Assembly (NCBI GenBank): GCA_964035545.1
Contig: OZ037770.1
Coordinates: 11,056,463 to 11,120,462, forward strand
Length of the DNA: 64,000 nt
Direction: 5' to 3'
From: Bugula neritina
Lineage: Eukaryota; Animalia; Bryozoa
Position 1 is the first letter of the stretch. The number at the start of each line of letters is the position of its first letter. Position numbers and translations under genes: made by a program. Positions 1 through 64,000 of the stretch are shown piece after piece. The notes below the pieces were generated by a model. That model did not search any database and was not told the DNA's origin. It saw only the letters and a program-made list of their open reading frames with translations.

Positions 1-3000
1 GTTCTGTGATAAACATAGAGATCAACCTTACAGTGTTGGATGTAGAGATTGTTTGAGTCTCTGTTGTGTGAAATGTCTGTCTGGTTTGAAGAACTGTACC
101 AGCACCGGTGAGTGGATAATAAATAATAATTATATACCAGCATTGGTGATTGGTTAATAATTATTAACGCAGTCACATTAGTTATGGGTCAACAGCTATA
201 TGTACCAGCACTGATGATTGGCTGGCAACTATATATCCACACTTGTGATTGCATGTCTGATCAACAATTTTATACTATATAAGTGGTTATGTAATCTCTC
301 AACTCATCAACCAAGAGTTTTTTTCTGGAACGGTATATTTAGAAAATATAATATGACAATATAGACAAAAATAGTCCTGTTGAAAAATCTTCAATAAACT
401 ACATTTGTAAAAAAGACTTTAAAACTCAATTTCTGATGATATATCTACAGTTTTCTTGTAGATAATAGCTAGTCTTTTTGGTTTATGTCTACAAAGTTTC
501 ATGTCGGAATCTTTGTAGGCAATCCTTGTCATTAGCCAATGACATCCTAACTTAGCTGAGAGCTATTCAAATAATAGTCACATTATATTCTATATGTTCT
601 AGAGATATGTATTTACACAATGGTGTGAGACTCAGATGTACTTGTAGGTGTCAATCACAAACTCTGCTCTCTTGAAGAACTGACGTCTGAGTTGAAACAA
701 GACATCAATGCACTGACTTCTAAACTCAGCAACAAAGAGGGAAAATGGGCTTCTATTAGCAAGTCCACTAGTACCTTGTTATCTGACTTCACATTGAAAA
801 CGGAGAGGTTCGTTGATTCCTTGGAAAAAACAAAAGAAGAGCAGGTAAATGTTACATGTCTCAGTTTTGCTTAAGGTAAATTGTGTTGTTAGTTTCAGAA
901 TATCAGTAACATTACAATAAATTTTCTAATTAGATTTTTTGCTACTAGGTTAAAATTACATTACAATAATTATGTCTATATTTAAACTAAAGAAATCACA
1001 AAAACAATTGAAAAGTTATGCTGAGAAAATAAAATAAGTGGAATCGAAAAATTACCACCAAAGTGGCTTACCGTTATAGATTGTTGGGTAATCTAATTAC
1101 CGCATGTTAGTAGTCAATTGCTACTCAAACTAATGTAAAAGTAATTTAAAAGTATTATTTCATTTGTTTACTCAAATGGCTAGCTTTTAATAAATTTTCT
1201 TGATGCATAACACTTTTTGAAAGATTGGAGAACTTACTTCAAAATATGAAAGTTTGAAATCGGACTTTCTAAAACAACGACAAGAAATTCAGAAAAAGAT
1301 AAACCAGTTTATAGAAGCAGATGTAAATGAAGAGTGTTCAAATTTTTGGACGCAAAGAGTAAGAATTTTGGCTAAGCTTCGTCAAAATCATCAAGTACGT
1401 ATCTGCATGTTTTTAGGTGTACCGTAGTTAACAAAAGTTGTTAAGAAAATTATTGCATATCATATAGACTGAAAGTACAGTTTAAAAATGTATGAAATAT
1501 AAGTAGATTTACTTAATTTAACAGTCTCTAGTTACAATAAACAGGGCGTTAATAAGATTTTTTATCAACATTGACCAAATATGATAATGCTTTTTATGCC
1601 ATATTTTTTATTATTAAAATATTGCTTAAACAACATATTCAAAAGTTGTTTTTTCTTTATTTAAGGCTATGTTAAGCTCAACTAAAAGTGTATTTGTAGT
1701 ATAAATTATACAAAATTACTTTATGAACTCATATTTCAAACTTGATCAAAAATAACTTACCACTCACATTTTATTCTTGAACTGGGCGCTTTTTTATTAA
1801 ATTTCTTAGGACCACCTGTTATAGTGTTTTTTATTTGTGATAAAGGTTGACATTGTTAATGACTACAGAGAGATCAAGCAGCATATAGATAATCTTCTAG
1901 GCAAAGCGACACCTGCTTTACAGTTGAAGAAAATACCAGAACTGAGAACTACAGGTGAGACAAACCCCAAGTTCAGGTTAAAGGAAACTATATGGTATTA
2001 CAATGACTATATATAACATATAGCAATAGTATTCAATTATAATGAAATCGCTTACATAATTTTTGCATGATAACTTGTTTAGCACACTGCGATTTCAGGT
2101 AAAACTAGAAATTTGGAAATGGAAATCACAGATCAGGACACAAAAAATGGTAATTTTTTCTTAAATGATTTTAAAACTTTTATTGCCTCCCACTCTGCTA
2201 CAATTATATACACTAACTAGTTAAGTGTTTAAAATCAGCACATAATTTAGTTATGATATTGGCCAATTATATTAAAAACTTTAAAATTTACCATGTTTTG
2301 GTTGGCTAAACATAATTGAAAGCTTAAATTCTGTTTATGCCAACCAATATGTAGAAAAATTTGATTAAATAAAAAATAGACCAAAACTTTCTAATAAATG
2401 GTGTTTTGTAACCGAACAAACTGAGCATAACCTAGAAAATATAATTTAACTTTGCAGTGAAACTTTGCAGTGAAAAAAACATCAAGTTCCTGAATTTCAA
2501 TCAGCTCAGCTATAAAAGAATGTCCTCAATTATAAAAGTCTGTGCCATTAATAACTTTCTTGAATACTGAAAATTTATAAAAGCATTCTAGTAATTAGGG
2601 ATCATTACTAGTATTAGTGGCTTTGAAGCTATGTCAATAACAAAAATATTGCCCTGTTGTTCTTCTATATAATGCTATTTTATATATAATTTGTATATTT
2701 GAATATGTGTTTAAATTTTAGTTGATACTCTTGCTCCACCATCACGCGACCCGCCATCTAAAAATGAGGACCTGGCGCATAACGAATGTGAGAGTATATA
2801 AGTTTTGACCTTAAAATTTTCACCGACAATAGTTTTGGTAAGAGTTATGACTTGCCTCACGAATGACGCAATTGTCCATCAGGTTTTAGTGAGTATCAAT
2901 CAGATTGTTGCCACAACTAATGGTACATAGTATGACAGTTTCAATGTTTTACCACAGTGTACACCTATAATGATATATGCTTTAGTATATTAACTAACCT

Positions 3001-14818: not shown

Positions 14819-17800
14819 ATGGCAACTGCTGCAAGTTCGGATCCAATAAAAAGAGAGTGTGGTTTCTGTCTGCGAGTAGATGATGATTTGGTGGGTCCTA
14901 AGCAACTTCCCTGTTCTCATGTACACTGTGGTCCATGTCTTAAAGGAGCCTTCAATGTGGCAAGAATACTGAAGTGTCCCCATTGCAGGTTGTACCATAC
15001 GTCTTTTCAAATAATGGGTATGAAACATGTTTTAGAAGACCTGTGGTTTAGTAACATATGATACATTTGACAATGTAATGTATTAGGCATTGTCATAAGC
15101 AACAAATAATTCTTAAGCTCGACTGCAGTGGCATGCATTAAAATAGTAACACTTTGTTTAGTGAATGATCACTTTTTCTGGGCAACATAGTTCATCTTAT
15201 AGCAGGTTGCAGCTAGCGCCTAGGGCCGGCGTTAGCATAAGCCTAGTGTGACACAAGTAATGGGTTTGAGTTTGAGTCATTGGTAATGTCAGGAAGAGTA
15301 TCTAATCACAATTGCTCTTGTGTTATGGTAAAAGTTAGGATCATTGGAAAGTTCTGCAAACATCTTTGACATCGGTTTATACCCCATCAAATGCTTTTAG
15401 GCACTTAAGTTTTCTGCTTCTCTTGTAAAACCAATAGGTCTACAATGCATGCAATATGTTTAGAAATCCTTGTAATTCACAATAAAATGTAAGATAGCAA
15501 GTTGTTTTCAAAATAATAATATATTTTAAAAAAAGAGCCAATTCAAATAAATTCCCTTTAACTGCTGGTGGCTTAAGTAGGGGACATTCCGATATTATAA
15601 GAGATATTCGTGTTGTCCTTAATCGCCCTCAAGTTATTAAAAATTGTTTCATACACTTAATTCAAAATCTTTTGGTCAGCATTACATTTATTGTGTGAAA
15701 TCCCTCTTAATATTTAGTTTTTTTTTTTAAAATATTCATAAAAATATATGTTTTTCCATTAGTCTCTGACAAATATACCTAGGTACTCTTTTTCTCGCTA
15801 TGAGTCATCATCTCGGTGAAAAATGCTGTTTGCAGTGAAATATTTGAAGAAGATGTGAACAATTTGCTTTCAACTGAAAAGCCTATAGAAGATTCCTTAC
15901 GAATAAAATGCGATCTATGTTATAAGAAAAAGGGAGAAAGTGTTGCAGCTGTTATTTGTTGCGCTTCATGCGAACAAAATTACTGCCTCTCACACAAGGA
16001 GGTTTGGTGTTGGTTATTGTATTGTGCATAAGGTTATATTATTTTGTTGTAGCTATTTTGAACAAGTCTGAATGTGCTCAAGCTGGTTGGTTAGCGAAAG
16101 AGGCCAAAGCCATGTTTTATTTCCGCAATATACAATACAATTTAATACTAAAACTATAAAATAAGTGAAACAATTGATTATTATCATTATTATGCACAAA
16201 AGTAGTAAGTTAATAAAATAACACTACACATAATTATTTACATAAATACCAAACATCCTCACATAATTGACAGATGCTGGGTAGGCGTGAATGTCTTAAG
16301 ATGACACATAGTCTGACATCCAACTAGGGGGCTTCCGAAATCTGGTTGAACGCCGCAAGTTGTCGCTATGATTGGCACTCCCAGTGGTTTCAATCTCGGT
16401 TCCGTCAGACTTTTTTTTAAGACTCTTAGGTTTCTCAAGACTTGCTGCTTCCGTGACAAGCGGTTTGATATCTCGCCAGTTTCTTCGTAGGAGATTGCTG
16501 TTGAGCTGCACGGCATAGGCTCTGCTAGTTAATTGTTTGCTTATTTGTATCTCCCGCCATTTTTTCCAGTGTTGACTCCAGTCTTGATCCAAAACTGGTT
16601 GCCCTTCTTCCAGTGCTGCCAAATCTTTTGCGTTGTTATTAAATCTCTGCTGCAGCATTTTGCTGCGGCTTTACTTTTTCCAATAGCATTGATTGTGGTC
16701 TGTTTCTAGCGTGAATTGGGGTAGAACTGATCTGGTTGGTCTTCCAATAAGCTGTTGAATGGGACGGGTCGTTTCTGCTTTTCAGCCAATTGTAGAATTT
16801 CAGACACACCACCAGCTCTCCATATCTATCATCATCAATTTAATGGAAAAGCAGAGTTTGCTGTGAAAATTGTTAAATGCATACTTCACAGTTGTGCAAA
16901 GCCCGAAATTGCTCTGTTAGAACATCCAAATATCGCCAAGGAAGACCTGACGGCCAGTTTGAAGTAGTTGAAGAAACTTATTCTGAAGTGCCTTTGAAAT
17001 AATAGCTGTTAGCCCTTTGTAAACAATTCCATTGTCGATAGATAGTTCATCTTGGAAGTATTTGTACCAGTCATAAATGGTGCACTTGGGAGTGTACTAG
17101 TCATGTTTAATAAGGTTTGTCAGTGTCATAAGTTCATTGTCTTATGCAGTAGTTGTCCTAATGTCAATTATCAATTCACCACAAAAACGAGAATTATTAT
17201 TTTGAGAGTCAATGTGGAAGATGTATTCTGGTAGTTGATAGTTGGGCGAGTCAAAGTATGAGTCTCTTGAGAGTAAGTCGACGGTGATCTGTCCAGCACC
17301 CTTTTGCCAAGTTACCTTAACGTTAGAGTATCTTTGTAAGTGAAGATGCATAGCCTACAACCTCTGAGATGTCTTATGAATAGATTTTCTGAAAATAGAG
17401 ACTAGGGGTTTGTGGTCAGTCTAGAATAATGACAGCATGGTAACCAAAGATATACTGGTCATAGTGCTCAGGGCCAAAAACACGCAAGTTCTAACAATAC
17501 ATAGTTCGGTCCTGATTTTGTTAAACTGTGGGATGCATATGCTACAGGCTTGCCTCCTTGAATGAGTGTTCCACCCACATCAGCATTTGAAGCGTCAGTT
17601 TGTATAGTAACTGGTTTGTTACACTCAAGTATTGTAAAGTTTTTGAGTCAGTTAGTAAAGTTTTCAGTCTATTAAAGTGTTCATTTGGTCATCAGTCCAG
17701 TGAACGTCTTAAACATTGTCTTGTGTCAGTAAACGTCGTAGTGCTTTATATTCCAATGCAAGATTGTTAATAAATTGTTACATGTATGTGATGTGACCTA

Positions 17801-29800: not shown

Positions 29801-32800
29801 GAAATTATGATCAATTTGTTACAGAAACATGAGGAGATGCATGATGATCACCAAACTCTCACAATACAAGAATATAGAGCTAATGCTAACAAGATGAAAG
29901 TTAGACTCTGTGATAAACATGAAGATCAGCCCTACAGTGTTGGATGTAGAGATTGTCTGAGTCTCTGTTGTGTGAAATGTCTGTCTGCTTTGAAGAACTG
30001 TACCAGCACCAGTGAGTAGATACTATAATTATGTATCAGCATTGGTGATTGTTTAGCAATTATTCACTGACACTAGTTGTTGGTCAAGAATTATGTACCA
30101 ACACATGTGATTTGCTGACAGTTACATACTAACACTAGTGATTGGGTAAAAACTATTTATCAGCACTGGTGATTGGTTCGTTGTTATATTTTATGTGGAG
30201 TGGTTAAAACCTGGTAAATCTACACATAGTTCTAGAATTGTTGAGGTAGTTGCAGTAATGGAAGAATTAAAAAAATAAGCTGGTGCTTTAGACTAGAAAT
30301 GTATCAAAAAAAGTTATGTTCTCTCGAGAATTTCAACCGCGTCCCAAACCAAACTTAGGCTATCTCAATTTCTCCACTACTGCTCCTAAATGGAAATTCA
30401 ATAAAACCATCAATTGATTGAGCAAACCCAGCTTATCATTCGAATATTGTGTTTATTCAATGCATATAGCAATTACAGAATATTAGTTTACTTAATGGTA
30501 TGGGACTCAGATGAACTTGTAGGTGTCAACCACCAGCTGTGCTCTTTGGAAGAACTGACGTCTGAGTTGAAGCAAGACGTTGATGCACTGACTTCTAAAC
30601 TAAACATCAAAGAGGGAGAATGGGCCTCTCTTAGCAAGGCTGCTAGTATGTTGTTATCTGACTTCATTTCAGAGACAGAGAGGTTCGTTGGTTGTCTGCA
30701 TAAGACAAGAGATGAGCAGGTAAATATATATCTCAGGCTGGCAAGCTTCTTTGATTATCAACGTGATATATTAACAATACAATTTATTGTTTTTATTATT
30801 TTTTTGTTTAGATGGTTTAAGAACTCTTATCTACTAAAAACCCGCAAAAGAGTGAAACAATAAAAAGCCTTTATTTGAAAATAGAATAGAGAAAGTTGAA
30901 AAATGACAATAATAACACCTCACGTAGACTGTTGAATAAACCATTGTTTTTGCTGCTCACCTTAACGTAAGAAATAATTTAAATTTAATACCATGTTTAA
31001 TCAAACTTGTTGGTTTATTTTTTTCAAGATTCAAGAACTTACTTTAGGATATAAGAATTTAGAGGCAGAGTTTGTGAAGCAGCGACAGACAATTCAGGCA
31101 AAGATAAGCCAGTTTATAGAAGTAGATGTGAACGAAGAGCGTTTAAATTTTTTCATGCAAAAGTCAAGAATTGCAGCTAAGCTTCGTCAAAGTCATCAAG
31201 TATGTATCTGCTTTTCTAAATGCTGTATAAGTAACAAATACTACCGTAGTTATAGGAGGATCATTCAGTAATTACTGGTTACAATAAATATAAGCGTTAT
31301 AATTATAGGCTTTACTAGTGTTAATCAAACACCATGATGCTTTTTTATCATACTTTTCATTATTTGAGCATTGCTTCAATAAAATTTTCAAAGAAAAAAT
31401 TATTTTATTAAAATGTCTTTTGGTTTTGTTAAACGTTTATTTGTGGGGGAAATTTTCCTTCATATGTGCTTTATCAACACATAGTTCACACTTGATCAAA
31501 ATAAAGCACTATTTGCATTTTATCCTTATGCACTTACTACATATTTTACTAAACTGCTTAGAAATTGTACAGTTTTGTTTTTTAAAAAGGTTGAGATTGT
31601 GAATGACTACAGAGAGACGAAGCAGCATATAAATCACCTTCTTAACAAAGAGACACCTGTACTACAGCTGAGAAAAATACCAGAGCTGAGAACTACAGGT
31701 GAGCAAAATATTAATTTCTGATTCAAAGTGAATAGCTTCATTAACATCTTATTCCGTAAGAAAGTTCCTGATCAAATAGTTAATTTCTCATTGATCAAAC
31801 TTTTCAGGTATTACTAGAAATTTGGAAATGGAAATCACAGATCAAGACACAAAAAATGGTAAATTTTCTTTCCCTTGTCTTTCCATGCAAGTAACTACGT
31901 GTATATATATAAATGTTACAAATTCTGAGTATAACATATACTTATAGAATTACCAGGTTTTTCCTAATGATTATACAAGAATGTTCATAAATATTTTAGA
32001 CTAATCAAAGATATGGGTCATTGTTCATTATTACTGTTTTTATTAGTCATGTTAACTACTGCCCAGCAATGTAAACAATTAAGGTGTTGCGCAATAATTG
32101 CGAAATAACCATGAAAGTTCCAATGTTTTGCTTTGTTTGGGTTTTCTATCTTTGAATAGTATTGGCATGTGGGGAATTTTTTCTACTAGAATTTTCTATA
32201 CTGGAATGCTTGAGAATGTTCTAAAGTTTTTGTTTACTATAAATGCTGAGGCAGTTGTGTTTACTTAAATCAGTTCATTTTCATAAGTTCATCTGTGCAT
32301 ATCTTACTGGAGAAACAAATTCTACTTATATTCACAACTCTATTTACTCTCAACTGGATTAGCAAGCTGTATGCTACCTGTCTATACACTTCTGAATACC
32401 AGACTTTTCGAACTCGTCACACTGCTACCAAAGTTTTGTGACAATAAAAAATACTTGCTAGCTAATTGGTGCATTAGTTAGCATAAGGTTTGTTTAGAAC
32501 CCAAAACATTGTATCACATTGCTAATTTCCAGTTATTTTTATTAAATCAGTTTTTTTTTAAATTTCAGAGTTTTGACATTCGACAAGAATTTTCTGATCA
32601 ACAAATTATTTTATTTTATTTCATAATCATCTGAGCAAATATGAAAATTTAGTCATTATGTTTTTAGCGTGTTGTTTTGATACTAAAACTAAACTTTACA
32701 TTGAAATAAAATCATCAAATTCTGAATAGCCATTAGCTAAAAGCAGATATGAGGATTTCCTGATCTTTTAAAAAAATTGTTTTCAGCAATAACTTTCTTA

Positions 32801-38414: not shown

Positions 38415-41400
38415 ATGGCAGCTGCTGCAAGTTCAGATACAATGTCGAGGAAATGTGGGTTCTGCCTTCAAGTAGATGATGATTTGGTAGATCCTAAGCA
38501 ACTTCCCTGTTCTCATATACACTGTGGTCAGTGTCTCAAAGAGGCCTTTAGTATTGCAAGAATACTGAGGTGTCCCCATTGCAGGTAACAAACAGTTTGT
38601 CAAATGATATTTATCAAAAAAGCTTTGAGTGGCATGTGGTTTGATGAAATATGATATCTTATAATTCTTTCTCAACGTTTAAATGCATTGATTCTAATTT
38701 TTTGTTTAAATAAAGATGTAAGTCAATAGATTGATTGGTTTTAACTGTTAGACTGTTTTGGCACCTGTATATCTATGTCGACTTGTGTTTGAATATTTTT
38801 GGCTGCTGCTTTTGTAGTACCGGTCCAGTGCAAGGAACTTTTTTTCAGCTCAAGCATATTTTCTTTGTAATTTAAAATAAAATGTAAACTAATTGTTTTT
38901 GACATATAATATACTTGGGAAAAAAAATTACATTTATTCAATTAAATTGTAACTGATGAAACTATACAAATTATTATTTCAGAGTTTTGTAAAACTTCAA
39001 TAAGCCAAGCTAGAGTCAATAAAAAATATTTTAATACACAATATTTCAAACTTATTACATTATAATACAATACTTTTTATAAAGGTTTAATCTTTGACAA
39101 AGATGGTTTTAAAAAGTGGTACTGTTTTCCCAACTGTTCCTTACAAATATATGCATTGCACTGGTTTTGTCGCTTTAAATCATCATTTCAGCCTTAAAAT
39201 GCTGTTTGTAGTCAAATATTTGAAGGAGATGTGAAAAATTTGCCCTCCGCTAAAGAGCCTACAGAAGAATCTTTACAAATAATATGCGATCCTTGTTATA
39301 AGAATAGAGGAGAACGTATTGCAGCTGTTATTTGTTGTTCCTCGTGCAAAAAGAACTACTGCCTTTCACACAAGAAGGTGTGATATCATTTATACATACT
39401 ACCAAGTGGTTAAGTTGTTTAGGTTTTTGATAATCACTCACTAAACTGTTATTTCAACTCGACCAGCGGCGCAAAAAATTAAGTTTTATGCATTTAAACA
39501 GAAACTTAATTCAAAACATAATGTCACTTCTTTGCATAATTATAAAATTTAATAAATAGCTTCAAATTAAATAAACTGAATATTGACCATTTTTGTAAAA
39601 ATTTGGCAGCAAATCAAAACACACTAAAAAATTTTGCTTCATGTAAATAGTTTTTTATTAAAATTTAAATAAAAGAAGGATAGAAATGTGGTGTTGAAAA
39701 ACTAATATAGAAGATATCAATGAGTCATCAAAACCAAGTTTTGGTAGCGAAAGCAATGGAATTATTTTGGCTAGTAAAACATAATGAGTTGTTCAATATA
39801 TTATATTGAAATTATATTTTAATTTGTTACAGAAACATAAAGAGATGCTTGGTGACCATGAAACACTGACAATACAAGAATATAGAGCAAATGCTAACAA
39901 GATGAAAGTTAGATTCTGTGATAAACATAAAGATCAGCCTTACAGTGTTGGATGTAGAGATTGTCTGAGTCTCTGTTGTGTAAAATGTCTGTCTGGTTTG
40001 AAAAACTGTACCACGGGTGAGTGGATCAAAATTACACATAGGCATTAGTAATTGTTTAATAATAATATAGTAGCACTAGTGATTGGATAACAGAGAGCGT
40101 AGAGAATTTCAGGTACCCATTATTGTTTCCCCATGTAGCGTGTGCCTCTGTCATGCTACTTTGTATACCCCATTGAATACCATTGCCCTCTCGTAAATTA
40201 CTATGCAAATCCTTTGTAACACATGCCTGACTTAGATTACATACAAAATTAATCTGGTTGGCCAACAATAATATGGGTGATCACAGCATCTATACCCCCT
40301 GTTCACACATTGCCGTACGGTACGCCGTAACAGCAAATTTTCGCCATCTTTGTTAACATCAGGGCTGAATCGTACTTTGGTATACACTGCGGCATTGATC
40401 AAGCAGTGCTTGATTCAAAAAATCGCAGCAGGCCCCCATTGGGTAGAGTTGATCTGGTACTAAAATTTAAAAAACATTTTCACTAGTTTATTTTAATCGC
40501 TTATTGTCAATTTAAATTAACTAATTCAAAATTTTTTAAAGATCAAAAATCTTTTTCCGGCTTTTGTAAAATTGAACTCAGCTTAAAATTTAACTTTTTC
40601 CTAATTAGAAAAGCACGTAAACCAAAAACTTAAAAATCATTTGGACAGCTAAAATATTTATTATTCAAATTAGTTCGCACAATTATTTTGAAGCACAATT
40701 AAATTTAAAAGAGAATTCTTCTTTGAATTTATTTAAATGGTGCGACAAATTTGTGAATAATATCCAAATGCATTCAAATTACCGCAGACAATAATGAACC
40801 TCATTTTGATTGGTCACAACTCAACGTCATGCGTTGTACTTTATGTCAATGTGTGAACGCCTGTTAACAAAACGTAACAGCGGCGCCATTCTGTGTGTGT
40901 TATTGCGGTTCACGGTATGGCAATGTGTGAACAGGAAGATAGATGGTCACTCAAATTAATTAGAGCTACTATGATACTGCATAGTTGCCGCAGTGACAAT
41001 AATCCGGCAGGCCAATCACACTGCCTCGGCGAAACAGTCACACTTTGGTGCTACTCACATACAGTCTTAAATCATATTGTATTACTAGTTATTATATTTT
41101 TCTCATTAACTGACAGACTTGGGCTTTTTTTGTGCTGCAAGTCACCAATACACTGAATCAAAATGTTGAAGATTTTGAAGCACTTTTAGCTAGTAACTAC
41201 TAACAGTCAATAGATTAGTAAATACTGAGCCCTTGAGAAGGTTTGAAGTAGTACACACAGTATATAAATTGCACAAGACTGGTACATATACAGAGGTTAC
41301 CACTTATTAACTGCCATTGTTTCCTTATAACTGTTAGGTGCTTCTCACAAACTCCTTTCCATAGAGGAGTTACTTGCTGAGTTGATGAAAGACATCAACA

Positions 41401-44400
41401 AGTTGACCTCTGACCTACTGAATAAAGAAGGAGAGTTGTCTTCTCTAAGTAAGAAAGCTGGTAAATCAATATCTGAGTTTGAGACACAAACTGACACGTT
41501 TATAAAACTTCTGCACACAACTAGAGATAAGCAGGTAAAACATATATGGTTATTTTTTGTTATTAAACTAAAAAAAGTATGTTTAAAATTTTGAAAATGT
41601 CATGCAGTAAATTTCACGCTCTATCTAATAATATATTTTTTCTGATGAGCAATATACGTATGTTATATCACTTCTAAATCGGTTGTGAGAGTTTCCACCC
41701 ATCAATTTGCTTTATAAAGAACAGATATATGTAGTTTAAACAGATGTGGAATATTTGTCTAATATTATGCTGGAATGCTATTATAAGCAATATATAGAGT
41801 TATTTATATAATTTTTTATTATAAGAGTTGTCATGCAGAAAGTGTAGAAGCCATTTAATGTTCTGGTTGAGCGGCCATGTTGCTAATTGCTTGTTCTTCT
41901 TTCAGATTTGTTTATGCAACAACAGTAAACATAATACATTTAAAATATTGCTTTCAGATAATATTATATTACTTTTGTTTCCTATTACATCTTTTCATTT
42001 TTACTACCAATATTTATTACTAATCCTAGTTATTATTACTTATATAGATGTAAAAATTATTATTTATAAGTTGTCTACCAGTAGAGTAGTGTAACCAATG
42101 CCTGTTGCTTGACAGTTTGGCATTAGCTTGTTTATGGTAAGACAAGGTGATGCAGTGCTTAACAGCTTAATTAAGAGCTTTAAACACTATACGTATAACC
42201 TCATAACAAATCACATTTGGAAAACAGGCCTAGCCAAAACCTAACCAATTCAATAACTTCACTACATTTTAAAGCAAAATTTTATAATAGTAATCCTGGT
42301 TTTTTAGCCAAACAGTCAAATCATGCATTTCTAAACTAACAGCAGCCTCATTTGAAAATGATGAAAACTAGAATTGCCAAAAATATGTGCCTATAAGAAA
42401 GCTATAATATGGTGAACTGGTTGCTTTTAGTAAAAGTTGCTTTGATAGGCAGACATATTTACTAATTTTTGCTAGTTTTGTTCTAACATACCAATAAATG
42501 CTAAAACTGAGCACTCAAGAAAAATTTGTATGTATGGCAATACCACTGAATTTTATATAATAAAATGGTAATCAAAAATTTAAAAATATTATATATGCCA
42601 TAAAAAACTACCACGCCTTTATTAGCAAAGTACAAGCTTAAAACTTGGTTTCACAAATTGCAAAATTTTATATTAGTGCTGTACTGTTGTTATTAATATT
42701 ACATGTAGCTACAAGCTATTACACTGGAATACCAGAAGTTAGAGACTCAATTCATGGAACAGAGAAAGGCTAGACAAGCTCAAATAAACAAATTTCTGGA
42801 AGAAAAAGTCAATACAGTTTGGTCTACAATTCAGCTACAGAGGTTAAGAATTGAGGCTAAGCTCAAAAAACTTCATCAGGTCAGTTTTTTGGTTACTACA
42901 TATGCACAGCTTTACATTGCATAAATCTCCTGTTGACCAAATACTAAACTCAAGTTCTTTTATTAGCTTATTGCATGTCCAGCTGCCTATATATTAAAGA
43001 AAGTGGCCGTCAATGATATACGGTAGTTTGCAGTGCATAGATATAAAGACTCATTTTACAAACTTAAGGTTTAAATTATAAGCCAAAGGTGGGGTACTTA
43101 ATATATATTGTTCTTTAGCGCATGCAACTTACTACTCTATGTTAAAAGGTGGATGTGATTACCCAATACAGACAAACTAAAAACGAATTTGGAAAGCTTA
43201 TAGCTATGGAGATGCCAGAATTATTTTTGGAATTTCCAACTCTGCATACTATTGGTAAAAAAACCCATTTGATTTCCCATAAATTAGTTTTATGATAATA
43301 ATCAATTACTACCAGTTATTTGTTAACAAATGATTGTTTTTAGCACACAAACAGCTCTGTTTTATTTATTTCATCAATATATATATACATAAAGTAAAAA
43401 GAATACAATTAGGAATCACCCAAAGAAGGTAATGATGGGGCCCAATGGTGCGCCATAGCAGAGGCTAGTGAAAGCGCAGGGCCTAAAATGAATAACAGTT
43501 AGTCAGTTAAGTCAGTCAAGTTATGTGAATTAAATTGAGTCCGTTAAGTAAGTCAAGAAAGTAAGTCAGTAATGTATATTGTATCATTAGTGAAGATGTT
43601 ATTTGCTTATTTCCCTATAGAATTTTTGTTTTTCATGTGAGAATTTCTATTTTTTTAAATCGGTAAACTATATATGTTTAGATTTAAAAAAGAATATTGC
43701 GATAAAAATGGGACAAGAAGATTTTGCTATTGGTAAGCAGTTTTCTCTATCTGTTTTTATTTACCTTTAACTTTTGGATAGGTAAAAATTGCAGTAATTA
43801 AATACGATAAATAATCAATTATTAATATAGTCTACATAAGAATACAAATGATAATTATCAATAGTCCAGTTTTGTCATATTATTTTTATTCTAAAAGAGC
43901 AATATTTGATACTGGAACTTTTACATTTTACACTGTAAAAACACAGCTGACAGTTCAATTAAAAATTAACTTTCAACAACTCACAAGTTAACTTATTACC
44001 GTTATCTGCTTCACCAGGTGGACAAGTCTACTGGGAAGAGCCAATTGCCAAACAACAGAAAATCTTATTGAAACCAGAAAGTGCAGAGTATCAAAGTGTA
44101 ATGAAATCTTTCAGCCAGCATGCTGTTCAGACAATGCTAGCTGGTGGTTCTATGCAATCTAACAACCAGACTCAGGTAATAACTTAAATTAAGCTGATTT
44201 AAGAAATTTTTAATATAACCTGCTTTTTAGTCGCTATATATCTAGCAAACTAAACAAAGCAAATTTTTAGCTAGAAAAAATTTAATGTTACTTCAGTGAT
44301 ACTGTAACTTTCCTATTTTAGGTTAATAATATAAGACTTCATGGTGATCGAAGACGCCAATTTCCAAAAGTTGCCCAGTCTAATCAGTCCATTGGCAAAA

Positions 44401-45738
44401 AGTTCCGGGTAAACAGCTTTACCTACAAATTAAAATGTTGCTATATCAAGCTGCTGCTAAAACCTATTGCTTATTTTGCTAATTAAAATGTTATTTACAA
44501 TGCTGAAAAATTCCAGTTGATTTTTCTCTTTTTAGATAGAAGTTTATCGCGTACAAAATCTTGCCCACTACAGAAAATACATGGCACATAAAACAAGTGC
44601 TTCTAAACAGCAAAGTAGACAAAGAAATGCAGTAGTGACATCTCATCTGTGGTTTCAAACAACACCAGATGACATCCCTTCAATTGTTTCAGGGAATTTG
44701 TTTAAACAAAGTGAGTCAGGTGAGGTATAGAGTAATTTACAAATATGATTATTTGTAAATTAACAGCTATATATAGGCCATAGGTTATTCAATAGGTAGA
44801 ATGGCATATTGTATAGGTTTACTGTTAAGCAGAACATCTCATTCGAAATCGAGGCTGGTTGAACAGCAGACCCTATTTATGAAATTAAAGCTCTGCAAAA
44901 AAACTTCAAAGTCTCGAAATACTTCTGTACCTTTAAGAAAATTGAACTTTACGTTTTGTTTAAATTGCAACTTTTATTTTAGATGATTTGTACTATAAAC
45001 TTATGCATTTATGGATCTTGAGCTATAACATAAGTTTCAAAGCATTTGTTCAACAAGTATATTTCATGCACTATAGAAAATAACTTCAAGTCTTTTTTTA
45101 TGAATAAATTTAGTAAATGTTTGACAACCTTATCAACTAGCTCAGTTTGAGACGGAGTTCTTTTGGTAAGATCACTAAATTCAAACTAGGAATATTTAAA
45201 TTCAGATAATTTAAGTAATCCTGCTTAATAATTTTTATACAAGGTGATCATAACACAGCCTGCTTCAATTATTATGCAAGCTATATTGGTTCTTCGGCTA
45301 TATATTTAAATGTGTTTTATATCTAGTTTATATATAATTTTAAAGGGCAGCTAGTAAAAAAACTTTACCTAAAAACAATAAATTATTAAAATATTTTTAG
45401 GTTATTATGGTAGAAAACCAAGCATCTCTCTTTATTCAGGAGCTCACGATGCTGCAGAACCAGCGACGGGTTATTATTGTCAGAGTGAATATAATCGTTC
45501 TCGAGTTTACGTAAGAACTCAGGCAATTACTAACAAACTAGAAAAAAGACAAACAGGTGGCTCTCTTACATCCGGCTACCAGCAATATGCAGATAGTCAA
45601 ATGAGCATGGCATTTAGCTCATCATACCAATCAGGTCTTGGTTTGTTTGCAGATAACCTACCCTGTTCAACCCAGTATGAGGTGTATGATGATACCGCTG
45701 TCTATCCTGAATATGTTATCATTACACGTTCCTTATAA
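38415..45738 (+). CDS. TRIM-like copy C with C-terminal PARP-like (probably inactive) domain. Exons 38415-38584, 39212-39377, 39833-40016, 41338-41534, 42709-42879, 43149-43254, 43682-43732, 44018-44175, 44322-44408, 44536-44719, 45401-45738
   Basis: RING, B-box, B-box and coiled-coil exons parallel copy B. The last four exons give YW...LKPESAEYQSVMKSF, IEVYRVQN...Y, HLWFQTT, GYYG, DN...YEVYDDTAVYPEYVI. All junctions GT-AG and in frame with no internal stops. Confidence 0.8.
40298..40935. mobile_element. MITE with ~21-bp TIRs (PIF/Harbinger-like) in intron 3 of copy C
   Basis: CCTGTTCACACATTGCCGTAC ... GTATGGCAATGTGTGAACAGG (1 mismatch); TSD unclear. Confidence 0.75.
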
Positions 45739-45888
45739 TTAAGTAGCGTCATTTTCATCCTTTCATTAAGCTTAAGGATAGACTTTTTTTCAATTTATTC
45801 TGCGTGTGAAATTGGAAATAATAATCAATTTGATTTTTCTAGATGTTATAATAAAGAAGTTTTTTATCTATGTTGTTTGGAATCCCGA

Positions 45889-47624: not shown

Positions 47625-48581
47625 TCAAGAGTTCACTGTATTGTTGGGGACATTTTCAATGGGCTGTACTCTGATTGTCTTAACTCGAAGAATTCTCATG
47701 ATGTGAGTTCTGTAGCTAGGAGTCATTACGATGTATACAATGATGTTCAAAGTACCATAAATAGCTTGGTAATAGATAGATATCCATCTGGTGACAATAG
47801 TCACTCTCATTGGCAAAGTTTTAATTATATTAAAGATCACTGACAGAAAACTTGGAACATAAAGCAAATAAAATGTAATACAAATAATTAGAATGTATTG
47901 AGCTGATCTTTTCACCATTAAGTCATCTGTTCCAATCGTAGTACGTTGTTGCATTCTTTTAAGCTCTCTCCAAGTTTTGAATAGCAGAACCACACAAATT
48001 GTCAAACTTATTGTTATAGAAATCATAAAAACTGCTCCCGCTTGAGTATTGAAATAAATCGGCATAGATCCAAACATACTGAAACAAAAGTTCCTCAGGT
48101 CTGCGCTTATGGGGATACCTATCACAACAAGACTAACTATCCAGATTGTGCCAAGACAAGCTCCTAAGTTGTTAAGCACTTTGTCTGTCTGTACATTGAA
48201 TGGTCGACATATGGAAACATATCTTTCATAGCTACCAGTTACCAAGATGAGATTTCGAGCCAAGTATGTGGCAAAGCCAAGTATGTTGATTACAACTTGA
48301 TACACCAAGACCTCTCTGTCAGAAAGTTTTACAACTAGCCTGTTCAGATCACAGATGACAAATAAGGTAAATATTGTACCTGTGGCTATGTCTGATATTC
48401 CAATGTTTACTACGACCCAAAAATATCCATTTCTCTTTGACTTGTCCAAGCTTTTCAGCACAATCAAGTTTAGAATGTTGCATACAACACCAAGCATGTT
48501 GAGTACCATTGAGGCTGTAGGAATAGTTGAATCAGCACAGAGTTCTGTTACATCATCACACAGGAAGCTGTTGTTCTCCAT
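47625..48581 (-). CDS. Intronless class A (rhodopsin-like) GPCR, ~318 aa, orphan
   Basis: Seven hydrophobic segments; TM1 N, TM2 D (ISD), SYERYVSICRP (E/DRY), TM4 W, TM6 YVP, TM7 NIIVY; first ATG gives MENNSF. Confidence 0.9.
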   Translation of the reverse strand: MENNSFLCDDVTELCADSTIPTASMVLNMLGVVCNILNLIVLKSLDKSKRNGYFWVVVNIGISDIATGTIFTLFVICDLNRLVVKLSDREVLVYQVVINILGFATYLARNLILVTGSYERYVSICRPFNVQTDKVLNNLGACLGTIWIVSLVVIGIPISADLRNFCFSMFGSMPIYFNTQAGAVFMISITISLTICVVLLFKTWRELKRMQQRTTIGTDDLMVKRSAQYILIICITFYLLYVPSFLSVIFNIIKTLPMRVTIVTRWISIYYQAIYGTLNIIVYIVMTPSYRTHIMRILRVKTIRVQPIENVPNNTVNS

Positions 48582-51500
48582 TCTCTTGCTGATAGTTTTC
48601 AAGAGTAGTCAGCATACAACTTTTGACAGAGTATATTATGCAAAAGTTTTATACCTTTTAAGCTCGAAATCAGTCTTCCAATTGAAAAAGATGTTAGAAA
48701 TACATTGTATACTGTGAATCAGTAATGTTAATTTGCTTGAAAATATAATTAGAGAGAAACATTTTAGAGAAAGTCAAGTTAAATAATCAATGTTACGTTT
48801 ACAATTGAAAGCATATGCAAGATTGTAAGAATATAACAGTATGTCAGGTACAGAAATATTTTATATTTACCATAATTACATGCGTAGTAATATTTTAAAG
48901 TTGATTGAAAATGAAATTACTAATATTATAATGGATAACATAGAAATGTCACTTCTGTTAATACATGTTTAAATCGATAATTCTTGTATCAATATCATCT
49001 TATAGAAAGAGAAGATAGCAAAACATGACACTCTTGTTCTTGTCATGCGCAGTATGTTATTATAGTTGTAGCAATGTATGGGAATTTACATTTTTACAAT
49101 ATTTCTGCAGTGTAGACACAGAATTGAGGCTTTTAAAAAATATTAACCTAATGTAATGCACAGAAATATTTCATTTGGCATGTATTATAGACTGTAAAAT
49201 CTCAACTTTGACACATATAAAAGTTTAGCCAAGCGTATATTGATTGATTTGAAATGTAATTACTATTTCAACTTAATTTGGATAGCATATAGAAATGTCA
49301 TCTTTTCTTAATGTGTTCAAATCAATAATTTCAGTTTTGATTTCATTTTTATATGAAAATACAAAATACATGACATATAAGCTGGCAATCTCAACAGCAT
49401 GCTATTTTAAAATGCGTGACTATATTACATTTACTTTTTTTCTATACTAAAATTTGCTTTATTCAATGTTGCATAATTATACTCACTCTTATAGCATGCA
49501 GTGATTGAAATCTTGCGAAGCTAATACAAGCATTTTTATGAGTTCTTATATAACGCTGATGTAAGCAATATTACAGCTGTTCAACAGAAAATTATCATCA
49601 GAATTGGTTTACACTTTGAACAAACCCCTTCCTTTCGATGAAACTCTTTCCTTTTTTTAGAACATATATGAACCAGAAAAACCGGAAGCAGCTATAAAAT
49701 GAAGTGTAGACAAAGTTCGAGTTTGGAGAATAAAAAGTATACTTTAGAGAGAATCATGGTTGTAATATAGTAAAGAAACTCGTAAAGTAGTTAGAATCAA
49801 TAGCATCAATATGTGTAGCAGAAGCTAGACGTCCGATAATGATGTTTTCATAGTGAAGTGAAGTGTTCTCTGAAAATGCTATAACTGCTCAAACCCGAAG
49901 CTGATAAGACTTTTAATAATAAGTGTGAACTAATTTTTTAGTTTACATTATTTTAAGTATAGTTGATGTGCTAATTGTAATGGTTTTTGGTAAACAATAA
50001 TTGTGTATTTTTTAATAAATTCTAGTGTTTCACCTTTATTAAAATAATCAAATTAATAATAGAAAATGAAACATAATTGAACAGATTGATCACTCATTAT
50101 AAGAAGCTTCTTATTTTTTTTATTTTATTCCTTATCTACACTTTATGTATAGCTACTTTATTCACAAACACCAGCTAGGAAGCTTACGTTGAAATAGGTA
50201 GGACTGTAGTATTGTAGTGGCTGTGGGAAGTAAACCCCCTAGTACTCTCTATACCTAAGTACTTGTATTATTTTATGAGGCACAAAAGTCCCAAGGGACT
50301 CCAACTCCGTAGCGATACCGCAGCTCTGTGCGGCATTATCACCAGAACCCTATACTAACCTATCAGGACCAACCTCTTGGATATAAACAGCGCCTTCCAG
50401 TGCCCAGCCTCAGTTAGAAGATAAATGTCAACTACATTAGTTAAGTTACTTGTGTAATTGTTCCTAAATTGTACTCTTTTGCTACTTTCTATATGACTCT
50501 GTTGGTACGTAATTAGAATCTCAATACAGTTCCTTCTTTAAGACGTCAACTGTTTTGGTTTTTTACATAATCTCATAGTAGACATGCAGTAATAATTTGT
50601 GCATACAATCACACCCCACTTAATAGCACATAAAACTGCAACAGTATTTTTCACACATTTGCTATCAAGAAGCTGTTTGTTTAAAGAGTTGTCTTATACA
50701 AGCCCGATATTCTTCTTTTGATTTCGGCAAATTGGTCGATCGTGAAAGTTTTTCCGGGAACGAAGTGGCGTAAAGGCACCCGTAAGAACTAAAAATACTA
50801 ATTTATCTATTTCTATCGAAGAAAACTTTACTCTTTCTCTTTTATTTTGCCAACAGAGCTCATCATAATTATATCATTACCAGTACTTCATTCAGTCACT
50901 GAACTAAGTTTAAGGTTTATTTGACTTTTGAATTTCTATTTACTTCTATATTTTTCTCAATAATTTTGACCTTTTAATTGTTAAATATAAATTTACTGAT
51001 TACACTGATTTATTTTAAGTATTGACTATTGTCAGATTAGTAAAGTCAAAAGTAAAACTAAAAGTAAAAGACAAGTGAGCCGCCTCGAGCTTGTAGTTGT
51101 ACTTGTAGTTGTAGTTGTAAAATAAAAAAGAACAAAAGTGAAGTCTAAATGAGAGGCTGGCCGAAAAGTTGAAATCTAAGTAAATGTTAAAATACAGTCT
51201 TTACTCTCTAGTAAACTGGTGTAATTAAAATTGGAGTTTGAAGACAAATAATATTTATTAATAACATAACTTAAATAATAATAATATGACACTGTGATTA
51301 AGTTTAGCATCCGTTTACAATAAATTATTAAATTTTATAAATTAATATTGAAATTTATAGTAAAGAGTTTAAGTATGATTTATATTATTATATTTATTGT
51401 ATTTAAAATTATTAAATGATAATCATAAAGGAATTCACTGAGTCTCAAAAGTCAAAGTGAACGTTGATGCTAGCAACAAACTGAAAGTGGAAATTGGTTT

Positions 51501-52479
51501 ATTCTTCTCGTTATAGTTATAAGATATATTTAAACATTTACTAAATACTTATTTTATTTCAGGCTTATGATAATAGTTATACATTTTTGCTCATTTTGCT
51601 ACAGTTAATTTTGTAGCAAAACTATACTGAAAGTTATAATTAAAAGCTAGCTTTAAGTATAACTTACAGTTAGAGTATAATTGTATACCTATGCGTACAA
51701 AAAGTACAGCTATAGGTACAAAAAGTTGTTGAGTACTATTTATGATTCTTATTGATCAGTGTCACTGCGCTTACCCTTGATTATAAGTACATTCAATATT
51801 AGATTGTATGTAAATTAATACATTCTATCAATGCCAAATTAAATATTTAGAATTGCTATAATTGTCTGATTCTGCTAATATGTTATATAATTACAGTAAA
51901 TTTTATTGTGGTATTCCTGTTTTTATTAGAACTACTGGTATGAGACTTTATCATCATTCAGATAAATTATATTTAGGTGTTCTTAAAATATGACCAGTGT
52001 CGTGTTTTTGTCTTTTGCCTTTTTATTAAAACAGTTTCAGGGTTAAAGAAATTTAAAAAGCTTATGTGCTAATGAATGTATTTTAGCAAAAATATTGTGC
52101 TCTTGCGTATGTTAGTATCACCATTCTATATACATTTACAAATACTTGTCAAATATTTTCAATACTACTGGCAAAAATTAAGCTAAAAATATTGAACTGG
52201 TAATGAAATATAAGTTCACAAATATGTAAACTAATGTGTTCTCTAGTTTTCAAAAGAGTTAATGACCTAAAGCTGAACAAGTGAATGTTTAGAAGTAGAC
52301 AAATCTACACATTTAATATAAGCATCTCATATATGCCATTCATATATAATATATTTGAGGTACTGTATGACTTCAGGGCATGTTGAAGATTCAGATAGGT
52401 ATTTTGTGTGCTCAAACCTGTTGCAAATATATGCCTCATATTTATAGTCAATACTATTTACAAATACATTACGACCACT

Positions 52480-52875
52480 AGTGTACGGTGTTACAGCTAT
52501 AGTGCAACCAATAGTGTACTGTGTTACAGATATACTACAACCAATAGTGTACTGTTTTACAGATATACTACAACCAATAATGTACTGTGTTACAGATATA
52601 CTGCAACCAATAGTGTACTGTGTTACAGATATAGTGCAACCAATAGTGTACTGTGTTACAGATATAATGCAACCAATAGTGTACTGTGTTACAGATATAT
52701 TGCAACCAATAGTGTACTGTGTTACAGATATATTGCAACCAATAGTGTACTGTGTTACAGATATACTGCAGCCAATAGTATACTGTGTTACAGATATACT
52801 ACAACCAATAGTGTACTGTGTTACATATATACTGCAACCAATAGTGTACTGTGTTACAGATATATTGCAACCAAT
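52480..52875. repeat. 33-bp minisatellite (~12 units) abutting the GFUS start codon
   Basis: Unit ATAGTGTACTGTGTTACAGATATACTGCAACCA. Confidence 0.95.
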
Positions 52876-57882
<5,007 letters not shown>

Positions 57883-61849: not shown

Positions 61850-63791
61850 ATGTCTTCAGCCACCATTCAGCTGGCAAAGAGGTTTTCAGCCCGAAGTCTG
61901 CAAATTTTTTCTAGAAGAAAAGCCTTTCAACATTTATCTTGTCGACAGTTCAACGAGCAGTCCTGCATAAATCGTGAGTTGGACATCATAATAACTAGTG
62001 ATATCGAATAGTCACATTGCATAATAATCGACTGTTAAACACAAACTAAACTAGTTTAAAAATGTCTTTTGAATTTTAAAGCCGGAGATGGTCTCACCAA
62101 TGAACAAAAACTTATCTTTGAAACTGCAAAGGATTTTGCTACAAACGAAATGGAGCCTAAAATGAAACTCTGGGATGAAGAAGTTAGTCATCGTTAAGTA
62201 TTAATCTATTTTACGTTATAAACAGCTGCTATTGCATTTTAAGTCCAATCATATGCAACATGAAAGTTTAGTAAATGCTGCAGTTAGTGACCTCACCTAT
62301 ATCAAATCTGCATATCTTTCCTTACTATATGTATTCATAGCCTAATATATGGCCACTGTGTATGTACTAAAAAAAATTTCTCAGTGTAATAACCCATAAA
62401 TTTCACAAGAGATTTCATGGTTGTGCAGTTTTAAGATATTTTTTCTGTAGGAGATATTTCCAAGAGATGTGTTACAGAATGCAGCACAGCTGGGGTTTGG
62501 TGCCATCTATTGTAAAGAGGATTATGGAGGGACGGGACTGGGGCGGTTGGATGCCTCCATTATATTTGAGGCTCTGTCTACAGGTTGTGTGAGCACAACT
62601 GCATACATTAGTATTCACAAGTGAGTGTGGTGTGACTGTATTCTACTATTTTAGTGGCTGTACATTTGCTGGGAGCATATAACACATTTTGCTTCAAACT
62701 ATACGTTGCAAGAAAAGCTAAAAACTTGAAGGCTAATCGTTTGTGAATTTTTTGTTTATATCTTGGTATTAATTCTATAGTCATTGTCAGGCAATAATCA
62801 TATACAGCCAACTTATTTTTTTTAAGATTTACTCTGGTACAATTATGCAATTATGACTGGATGCTCGTTGTAACATCACCAATAGCCTTTACTGCGGATT
62901 GCACTCATGACTTCGGGTTAACTAGGCCAGCACTCTTACCCCTAGACCATGAATGTTGTCTCCATTTTGTTTTTAAATAATGGTATACTATTAGCACTTC
63001 ACTTGGATTTTTATTTTGAGCAAAAATATGTTAGATCTAAGGCTATCTGATCTCAGCCAATAGCAACTGTTAATGTTTTATTAAGCCCACAACAACAGCT
63101 TTGAATATAAGTATATTCCAAGCTGGTTTTTGGCAGCATGTGTGCATGGATGATTGATACCTTCGGAACAAAAGAGCTGAGAGAGAGACATTTACCAAGT
63201 CTGGCCAGTATGGAGAGATTTGCTTCATACTGTCTGACAGAGCCAGGTTCTGGTAGTGATGCTGCTTCTATATCCACTAGTGCTGTCAGAAAGGATGACA
63301 AATATATATTGAATGGCTCAAAGGTAAATTATGTTACTATGGCAACCAATGTTTACCTGGCTGTCTTTAATTACTTCTAAATTCAATCTGTATTCAGTTC
63401 AGTCTATCATATAAAACATGATTGTATGCAGTATATATACTTTTAAATTGACCCATGTGTTTTAAAATTCTATTTAATCTGTATATATAGCTTCTAAATT
63501 TATTTTCTGTTTCCCTCCAAAAGTATTTTTGAAATCGTCCAATTAGGGGTGTGGTGTATTATTGTATTTTTCTCGTTAGCACAGACTGTACCACGGCTGC
63601 TAGGATCAGACTGGTTAACTTTTTATGATGTAGCATGTGTTCTTATTTTAAAGGCATTCATAAGTGGGGGTGGAGAAAGTGACGTGTACCTTGTAATGTG
63701 TAGAACTGGAGATTCTGGTCCTAAGGGTATAAGCTGTGTGCTGGTAGAAAATGGATCACCAGGATTGTCATTTGGTGCCAAAGAAAAGAAG
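61850..63791 (+). CDS. ACAD8: Isobutyryl-CoA dehydrogenase, mitochondrial (3'-truncated by window). Exons 61850-61973, 62082-62182, 62451-62620, 63137-63323, 63654-63791
   Basis: Basic presequence; [89 protein letters not shown]. Confidence 0.93.
62847..62952 (-). mobile_element. tRNA-derived SINE remnant in an ACAD8 intron
   Basis: Minus strand TGGTCTAGGGGTAAGAGTGC (A-box-like), degenerate B box, and a core shared with 15280-15316. Confidence 0.5.
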
Positions 63792-64000
63792 GTAATGGAC
63801 TTTGAGTTACTAGAAATTGACTTTCGTATTGTGTTTTACAACACTGTATTTGTTTTATGTTCGCAAACAGCATTTAATTGTGGAAAAAGAAACAAAATAT
63901 GTTTGTCTTACAGCTACAAAACCTCTTAGCAGTTGTAAACTGGTGCTAAGTTTGTGTAACTTTTTAAATTATTTTATATAACACTTTTAGAACTATTAAC

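Follow-up and report, generated by a model that had tools for sequence, protein, structure and literature searches.

A probable TRIM ubiquitin ligase gene with a PARP14-like pseudo-enzyme tail in the bryozoan Bugula neritina

TRIM ubiquitin ligases are classified by the recognition domain at their C-terminus. Among PARP enzymes, active members hold NAD+ with an H-Y-[EIL] triad, while dead PARP domains such as those of ZAP and PARP9 partner E3 ligases in vertebrate antiviral defence, with a contribution of the dead domain itself that is poorly understood. Here, we describe a gene in a stretch of 64,000 nucleotides from Bugula neritina (C6:11056463-11120462 in a 216 Mb assembly, henceforth the window). 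The gene probably encodes a single TRIM E3 ligase with a RING/B-box/coiled-coil (RBCC) half, in which a pseudo-enzyme derived from a mono-ADP-ribosyltransferase domain of the PARP14/10/12 type takes the position that a β-propeller-like domain holds in most TRIMs of this genome. The finding is a sequence-level inference in a little-studied animal. In kind, the TRIM-PARP combination is a variant built of known parts and not a new kind, yet we found this domain combination undescribed in the literature searched. An earlier note on this DNA had already remarked that PARP is not known among the standard TRIM C-terminal classes; in agreement, the TRIM surveys searched, among them PMC3503706, list no RBCC-PARP class, an absence that is not proof, and neither a PARP survey (PMC4245714) nor the further literature searched contains a TRIM-PARP fusion.

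Several described systems resemble parts of this gene. Its tail follows the clade 3 mono-ADP-ribosyltransferases PARP14, PARP10, PARP15 and PARP12 (PF00644) in block order, i.e., W..P...L.P.S.EY..V, I.R[VI]QN..Y, L-W-x-x-T, an RV.TG-type strand and Y-P-E-Y-[VI]-I, and it has the exon layout of canonical PARP copies in the same genome, which match these structures at E 2e-25. It differs from them by Phe-Gln in place of His-Gly, by an unrecognisable GxGxYF motif and by the lack of any PF00644 score, and it carries two additions, a cassette of 29 residues behind the first block and a long, variable loop ahead of the last strands. ZAP (PARP13) and TRIM25 likewise functionally combine a dead clade 3 PARP domain with an RBCC ligase. 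In vertebrates, however, these are two proteins that reach their targets via the ZAP zinc fingers and the TRIM25 SPRY domain, whereas here a single chain is predicted that contains neither. DTX3L-PARP9 also brings together a RING E3 ligase and a PARP without the catalytic His, but the two are separate genes, DTX3L is of the Deltex type and not RBCC, and PARP9 has macrodomains. In Dictyostelium, one polypeptide does combine a domain of the E3 type with a PARP domain of clade 3, as reported for clade 3 PARPs with an N-terminal U-box and a macrodomain (Perina et al. 2014, PMC4245714). These Amoebozoan proteins represent an independent fusion, contain no B-box or coiled coil, and their PARP domain is not described as inactive in that study. 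A precedent for the PARP fold as a non-enzymatic interaction hub, as we propose for the tail, is provided by plant RCD1/SRO proteins, although they belong to another lineage, have WWE and RST as partner domains and contain no ligase domain. By analogy, the most plausible mode of action for the tail would be that of ZAP/PARP13, PARP9 or RCD1, whose inactive PARP domains serve as binding modules. Within the bryozoan genome itself, a TRIM-propeller (NHL-like) family shares the RBCC half and the habit of forming tandem arrays; its propeller-like recognition end is exchanged here for the pseudo-PARP tail.

The gene model, with borders read from the sequence, consists of 11 phase-consistent exons on the plus strand from 38415 to 45738. 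Their summed length of 1785 nt corresponds to 594 codons and the stop codon, TAA. All exon borders are AG/GT with compatible phases, the codons split by introns being AG-T, G-GT, G-AT, G-GT and G-GT (hyphens mark the junctions). The ATG of exon 1 is preceded by an in-frame stop 2 codons upstream, and skipping of e7 (51 nt) or e8b (87 nt) leaves the reading frame intact. The earlier note had proposed this 11-exon structure, with the tail exons in frame with a RING/B-box gene, and the splice sites and phases all fit it. The motifs it listed for the tail are likewise all present: W..L.PES.EY..V...F in e8, I..VQN...Y in e9, G.YG across the split codon between e9 and e10, and DN...Y.VY....VYPEYVI at the end of e10. 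The features of the gene are as follows, where L006 to L009 denote the paralogous copies described below.

38415-38584, plus strand: e1, ATG and C3HC4 RING; ends in phase 2; paralogs 66-84% identical
39212-39377, plus strand: e2, linker and first part of B-box 1; conserved in paralogs
39833-40016, plus strand: e3, remainder of B-box 1, then B-box 2; phase 1 at its end
41338-41534, plus strand: e4, final His of B-box 2, then the first segment of the predicted coiled coil; 92-97% identical to three downstream paralogs
42736-42879, plus strand: e5, predicted coiled coil; conserved in paralogs
43149-43254, plus strand: e6, final part of the predicted coiled coil; phase 1 at its end; paralogs 77-85% identical
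43682-43732, plus strand: e7, 51-nt linker mini-exon, phase 1 to 1; found in L006, L008 and L009, not in L007
44018-44175, plus strand: e8, PARP-like N-terminal block W-E-E-P ... L-x-P-x-S-x-E-Y-x-x-V-x-x-S-F; phase 1 acceptor
44322-44408, plus strand: e8b, cassette of 87 nt (phase 0-0), inserted when compared with canonical PARP domains
44536-44719, plus strand: e9, strand-helix-strand-helix block with the position of the NAD-site His-Gly of active PARPs, here L-W-F-Q-T
45401-45738, plus strand: e10, remodelled centre, V-Y-V-R-x-x-A-I-T strand, variable Q/S/Y-rich loop, C-terminal strands to Y-P-E-Y-V-I, stop
45850-45855, plus strand: AATAAA, likely polyadenylation signal found by pattern search, 112 nt past the TAA

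Domain signatures identify the N-terminal half as an RBCC/TRIM with a predicted coiled coil. The RING in e1 scores 22.1 bits with PF00097 (zf-C3HC4), against a cut-off of 21, and matches zf-RING_2 (PF13639) at E 6.6e-06; its zinc ligands are complete (C-x2-C-x15-C-x-H-x2-C-x2-C-x12-C-x2-C). B-box 2 in e3 is recovered by PF00643 at E 1.2e-05 (25.8 bits, cut-off 24.1). B-box 1 is recognised by eye as a Cys/His pattern across e2 and e3 (C-x2-C-x13-C-x2-C-x4-C-x2-H...), for which the Pfam B-box and AN1 matches are weak. In e4, hydrophobic residues occupy the a and d heptad positions perfectly over 28 residues, which none of 500 shuffles equalled, and e5 is free of Pro and Gly, with charged residues and Gln together making up 48%. 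Both e5 and e6 are helix-like, with no significant heptad signal in a crude shuffle test. With RING and B-box above the Pfam cut-offs and heptad periodicity in e4, the RING/B-box/B-box/coiled-coil order first noticed by the earlier note appears to hold. RBCC halves of this type form a genome-wide family, in which RING exons number more than 150 and coiled-coil exons at least 91. Outside the cluster, the nearest relatives end in a single exon of 270-300 residues with weak β-propeller signals, and no propeller-like exon or remnant of one was found in this cluster; the Pfam NHL scan of the genome is too insensitive for mapping the propeller family.

Separately, e3 and e4 are unusually alike among paralogs. 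Synonymous divergence (dS) is 0.05-0.18 for e4 and 0.13 for e3 in the downstream copies, as opposed to 0.2-0.65 for e1, e5 and e6. These low values suggest gene conversion between paralogs in the segment encoding B-box 2 and the first part of the coiled coil.

The tail, e8 to e10, almost certainly derives from a catalytic domain of the PARP14/10/12 type, judging from profiles that bridge between the two. All tests of the tail were conducted exon by exon. A profile of e9 run against 1.84 billion representative proteins returned four matches. One is the same exon from a metagenome, and two are protein fragments that contain V-E-T-x-P-L-W-H-G-T (P0002 and P0003, E 1.3e-05 and 9.7e-05); the fourth, P0004, is a low-complexity repeat protein and was ignored. 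Among PDB entries, P0003 in turn matches PARP14, PARP10, PARP15 and PARP12 catalytic domains (best E 1.2e-06), and the open reading frame (ORF) after it on its contig carries PF00644. In the bryozoan genome, the same e9 profile finds canonical PARP exons at C2:17050290 (1.6e-07), C2:678649, C4:1138818 and C2:1067706, each of which lies about 1 kb upstream of an exon above the PF00644 cut-off. These canonical genes share a three-exon layout. The first exon contains W..P....L.P.S.EY..V, the second extends from I-K-R-V-Q-N to F-D-R-G-x-x-G-K-N-G and the third from F-G-N-G-T-Y-F to Y-P-E-Y-I-I-K-F. Intron phases are equal in the canonical and the TRIM-linked genes, with phase 1 leading into the first exon, phase 0 into the second, and phase 1 at the intron that separates the second from the third. 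A profile of the canonical third exon matches PARP15, PARP10, PARP14 and PARP12 structures at about 2e-25, and also ZAP, RCD1 and tankyrases.

Direct comparison of TRIM-linked exons with these canonical exons by hhalign supports homology along the domain. For e9 the alignment reaches 98.1% with E 9.3e-14 over 55 columns, for e8 (paralog profile A3, against the canonical first exons) 95.4% with E 1.8e-08, and for e10 92.3% with E 5.4e-07 over the last 32 columns only. The tail blocks in which the earlier note had read PARP12/14/TiPARP-type landmarks match PARP exons of the same genome beyond chance. Further coverage of e10 comes from a relic about 4 kb before the window start, a lone open exon-10-like frame of 108 codons at L034:5458-5733 on the minus strand (C6:11052457-11052732). 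It aligns with the canonical profile (95.7%, E 9e-09, 55 columns that include the RV-TG strand) as well as with the TRIM-linked e10 profile (98.5%, E 2.4e-15). As it matches both sides, residues ~30-111 of e10 (~80 of 111) correspond by transitivity to the second half of the PARP catalytic domain. No exon 8 or 9 was found beside the relic, which is probably a remnant of an earlier copy. Taken in sequence, the recognisable blocks tile the domain in canonical order, from the N-terminal block through the H-G block and the RV-TG strand to the C-terminal strands, and the strand-forming blocks are the most conserved. ESM Atlas features for e10 yielded only unnamed phage clusters scoring <0.9, which were discarded.

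At the NAD site, canonical copies read L-W-H-G-T in the alignment, except for two at C2:678649 and C2:1067706 (L024 and L026) that read L-W-H-A-T. As far as the alignment tells, the donor family itself has begun, with L-W-H-A-T in these paralogs, to depart from the canonical NAD site. L-W-F-Q-T is found in the metagenome ortholog and in the TRIM-linked copies other than L006, which has L-W-F-P-T; His-Gly is thus lost in all five copies. This bears out the earlier reading of LWFQT in place of LFHGT, and the accompanying claim that the GxYF motif is lost is matched by e10 profiles that have no similarity where GxGxYF is expected. A conserved S-L-Y-S in e10 is a by-eye candidate only for the triad Tyr. 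In the ungapped C-terminal match, the canonical Ile, at the third triad position of mono-ADP-ribosyltransferases, is replaced by Gln in the window copy, by Tyr in three paralogs and by His in L006. Given the change of His-Gly to Phe-Gln and the loss of the donor loop, the tail would be unable to bind NAD+ in the canonical way, and we regard the absence of canonical NAD+ binding as very probable. Calling the tail catalytically dead is well founded at the sequence level.

Despite these losses, the tail exons appear to be maintained by selection. Pairwise dS between copies is 0.27-2.2, and the ratio of nonsynonymous to synonymous divergence (dN/dS) is 0.17-0.62 for e8, 0.24-0.66 for e9 and 0.45-0.98 for e10, with 0.09-0.68 for the RBCC exons. 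No stop codon or frameshift interrupts e8 to e10 in any of the five copies. In a neutral simulation at 0.2 substitutions per site about 7 stops are expected, and none of 2000 trials remained stop-free. By these sequence criteria the tail is a PARP-derived domain without the catalytic His that is yet kept under selection, i.e., of the pseudo-PARP type.

The gene had initially been taken for a single oddity. Instead, it belongs to a small local family, which is itself part of a TRIM superfamily with over 150 copies. Three tandem paralogs, L007, L008 and L009, lie on the minus strand at C6:11.198-11.224 Mb, 80-100 kb downstream of the window gene, and repeat e1-e6 and e8-e10 collinearly on the same strand within ~6.5 kb each, giving four complete copies of the TRIM-PARP-like gene. 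Junction phases match in every copy, and L007, which is without e7, is still in frame. Equivalents of e8b with 27-30 codons, good splice sites and an NQ[SP]IG motif occur in L007 and L008 and were not detected in L006 or L009. The fifth copy, L006:1346-3572 on the minus strand (C6:11161845-11164071), comprises open e7-e10 only, and a comparison at this copy detected no similarity to the retroelement of the window. The loop before the last strands of e10 varies from ~35 to ~120 residues between copies. An ortholog of 44344-45639 is found on L021, a JGI host-associated metagenome contig of 1596 bp, with 88-91% DNA identity including introns and 76% identity in e8b. Compared with the window, it differs by a ~220 bp repeat insertion in the intron between e9 and e10 and by a 45-nt in-frame indel in the e10 loop. 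The same contig shows that host DNA is present in that metagenome.

The two closest TRIM paralogs of the gene, genes A and B, carry e1-e6 but lack both a PARP-like and a propeller tail:

window 2-1950, with e1-e3 in L034:7770-9461: gene A, TRIM paralog without the tail
window 14819-16001 and 29825-31694: gene B, TRIM paralog without the tail; ~13.8 kb of GC-rich DNA between e2 and e3

Conversely, no TRIM exons occur within 7-8 kb upstream of the canonical PARP paralogs. With genes A and B lacking the tail and canonical PARPs lacking TRIM exons, the fusion appears specific to this small clade.

Several results weigh against a single gene with a PARP-derived tail and need to be set beside this evidence. 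The earlier note had named PF00644 as a check, and this part did not work out: the model matches none of the single exons e8, e8b, e9 and e10, and its genome scan returned 17 other exons and none at this locus. PARP descent was shown via the bridging profiles instead. A PDB search with e8, e9 and e10 profiles from the five paralogous copies gave chance matches only, with no PARP even at E 10, and Foldseek of single-exon models found no match in the PDB, a search for which fragment models are not a fair test. In the library of 1.84 billion proteins, the e9 profile found no full-length or spliced family member, only short genomic ORFs. The first ~28 residues of e10 give no signal against the canonical exons in local or global hhalign, and one pair of copies reaches the e10 dN/dS of 0.98. 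Finally, the only public run with the locus is genomic DNA, in which contigs read through the introns and contain no splice joints. A rival to the predicted junction 43732/44018 has two transcription units, a tail-less TRIM ending after e6 or e7 and a separate pseudo-PARP gene, co-duplicated as neighbours. Genes A and B, which carry e1-e6 without such a tail, fit this arrangement, and its best argument is L006, where e7-e10 are open, no TRIM exon is found in 17 kb upstream and no long ORF in 6.4 kb, so that the tail might work alone. However, e8 opens in phase 1 and contains no start codon, and the only Met nearby, in e7 of the gene described here, is not shared by the paralogs. The gaps of 427 nt between e6 and e7 and of 285 nt between e7 and e8 are of intron size, the phases of e6 (1), e7 (1-1) and e8 (1) are compatible in every copy, and L006 still has the e7 linker of the TRIM-linked gene, as expected of the 5'-truncated duplicate that it reads as. 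Collinear paralogs, fitting phases, the missing e8 start codon and the short gaps together favour one gene. We therefore consider two units unlikely, and placement of the TRIM half and the tail on one predicted transcript likely.

The remaining alternatives concern the state of the tail. It may no longer be folded like an ADP-ribosyltransferase (ART), its short blocks around a disordered Q/S/N/Y-rich segment serving as linear motifs or as a new small fold. The e10 centre without detectable PARP similarity and the wide range of loop lengths among copies would agree with this, as would the AlphaFold model of e10 alone, a fragment model with a predicted local distance difference test score (pLDDT) of 44 and a helix where canonical PARPs have a strand. 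For e9 with 15 aligned sequences, the fragment model (pLDDT 66) contains two helices and no strands; the helices lie at positions expected for a PARP catalytic domain. Against loss of the fold, recognisable blocks span the whole domain in canonical order with the strand-forming ones most conserved, and fragment models are an unfair test, which renders this alternative improbable though not negligible. Residual activity or NAD binding via non-canonical residues is far less probable. The Tyr of S-L-Y-S could replace that of the YF motif, a conserved His stands two residues before L-W-F in three copies, and pseudo-enzymes with migrated residues are known in general; yet no copy retains either the His or the Gly of the H-G motif, the GxGxYF region is gone together with its second Tyr, and two copies have another residue in place of the upstream His. 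Hardest of all to credit is that e8-e10 are decaying PARP relics behind a TRIM gene that are not expressed as protein. Their invisibility to Pfam, the high e10 dN/dS and the isolated exon-10-like relic that precedes the window point in this direction, but at dS of 0.4-1 five copies keep every frame and splice site and have only in-frame indels, an outcome without a single stop-free counterpart among the 2000 neutral trials. The gene is real and most likely functional.

For the predicted fusion of an RBCC ligase with a pseudo-PARP tail, a simple origin can be proposed. The 3' exon module of a PARP14-like gene, entering in phase 1, would have been placed behind the phase-1 end of the coiled-coil exons, and the fused gene would then have been duplicated in tandem. 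In the encoded protein, going by the general mechanism of TRIMs, the coiled coil may mediate dimerisation, the RING would recruit ubiquitin-loaded E2, and the PARP-like tail would act as a binding module that selects targets for ubiquitination, a role suggested by its lack of canonical NAD+ binding. By analogy with other dead PARP domains, we think target recognition by the tail somewhat favoured. Likely partners would be found among proteins that ordinarily bind PARP catalytic domains: PARP14-like paralogs that are active, the substrates of these, or factors directed against them. An immune role, such as the innate-immunity or antiviral sensor suggested by the earlier note, is possible but tentative. 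More speculative, and in our view doubtful, is that the tail represents an integrated decoy, a dead copy of an antiviral PARP14-like enzyme of the animal itself, mounted on a ligase that traps and ubiquitinates PARP-docking pathogen factors or selfish elements; if this were true, it would be an animal counterpart of the integrated-decoy domains in plant NLR receptors. A natural single-chain version in several diverging copies offers a simple system to ask what a dead PARP fold binds, and bears on how the ADP-ribosylation machinery and ubiquitination became linked. Because it shares the phase-1 module and the intron positions with the donor family, the locus would also illustrate exon shuffling cleanly, within a TRIM expansion that is very large and probably immune in role.

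The window is AT-rich, with ~30% GC outside one retroelement, and its genes are built from small exons with AG/GT introns. On the 3' side, the TRIM/PARP-like gene is bounded by an intronless ORF of 325 codons at 47625-48602 on the minus strand that matches rhodopsin-type G protein-coupled receptors (PF00001, E 4.3e-08). A tandem repeat of ~27 nt at 52327-52971 is open in several frames on both strands (units e.g. SVTQYTIGC) and directly precedes the G-G-S-G-L-V-G Rossmann-type start of a probable GDP-fucose synthase-like gene. Near the end of the window, acyl-CoA dehydrogenase exons occupy 63138-63929 (PF02770, E 4.2e-09).

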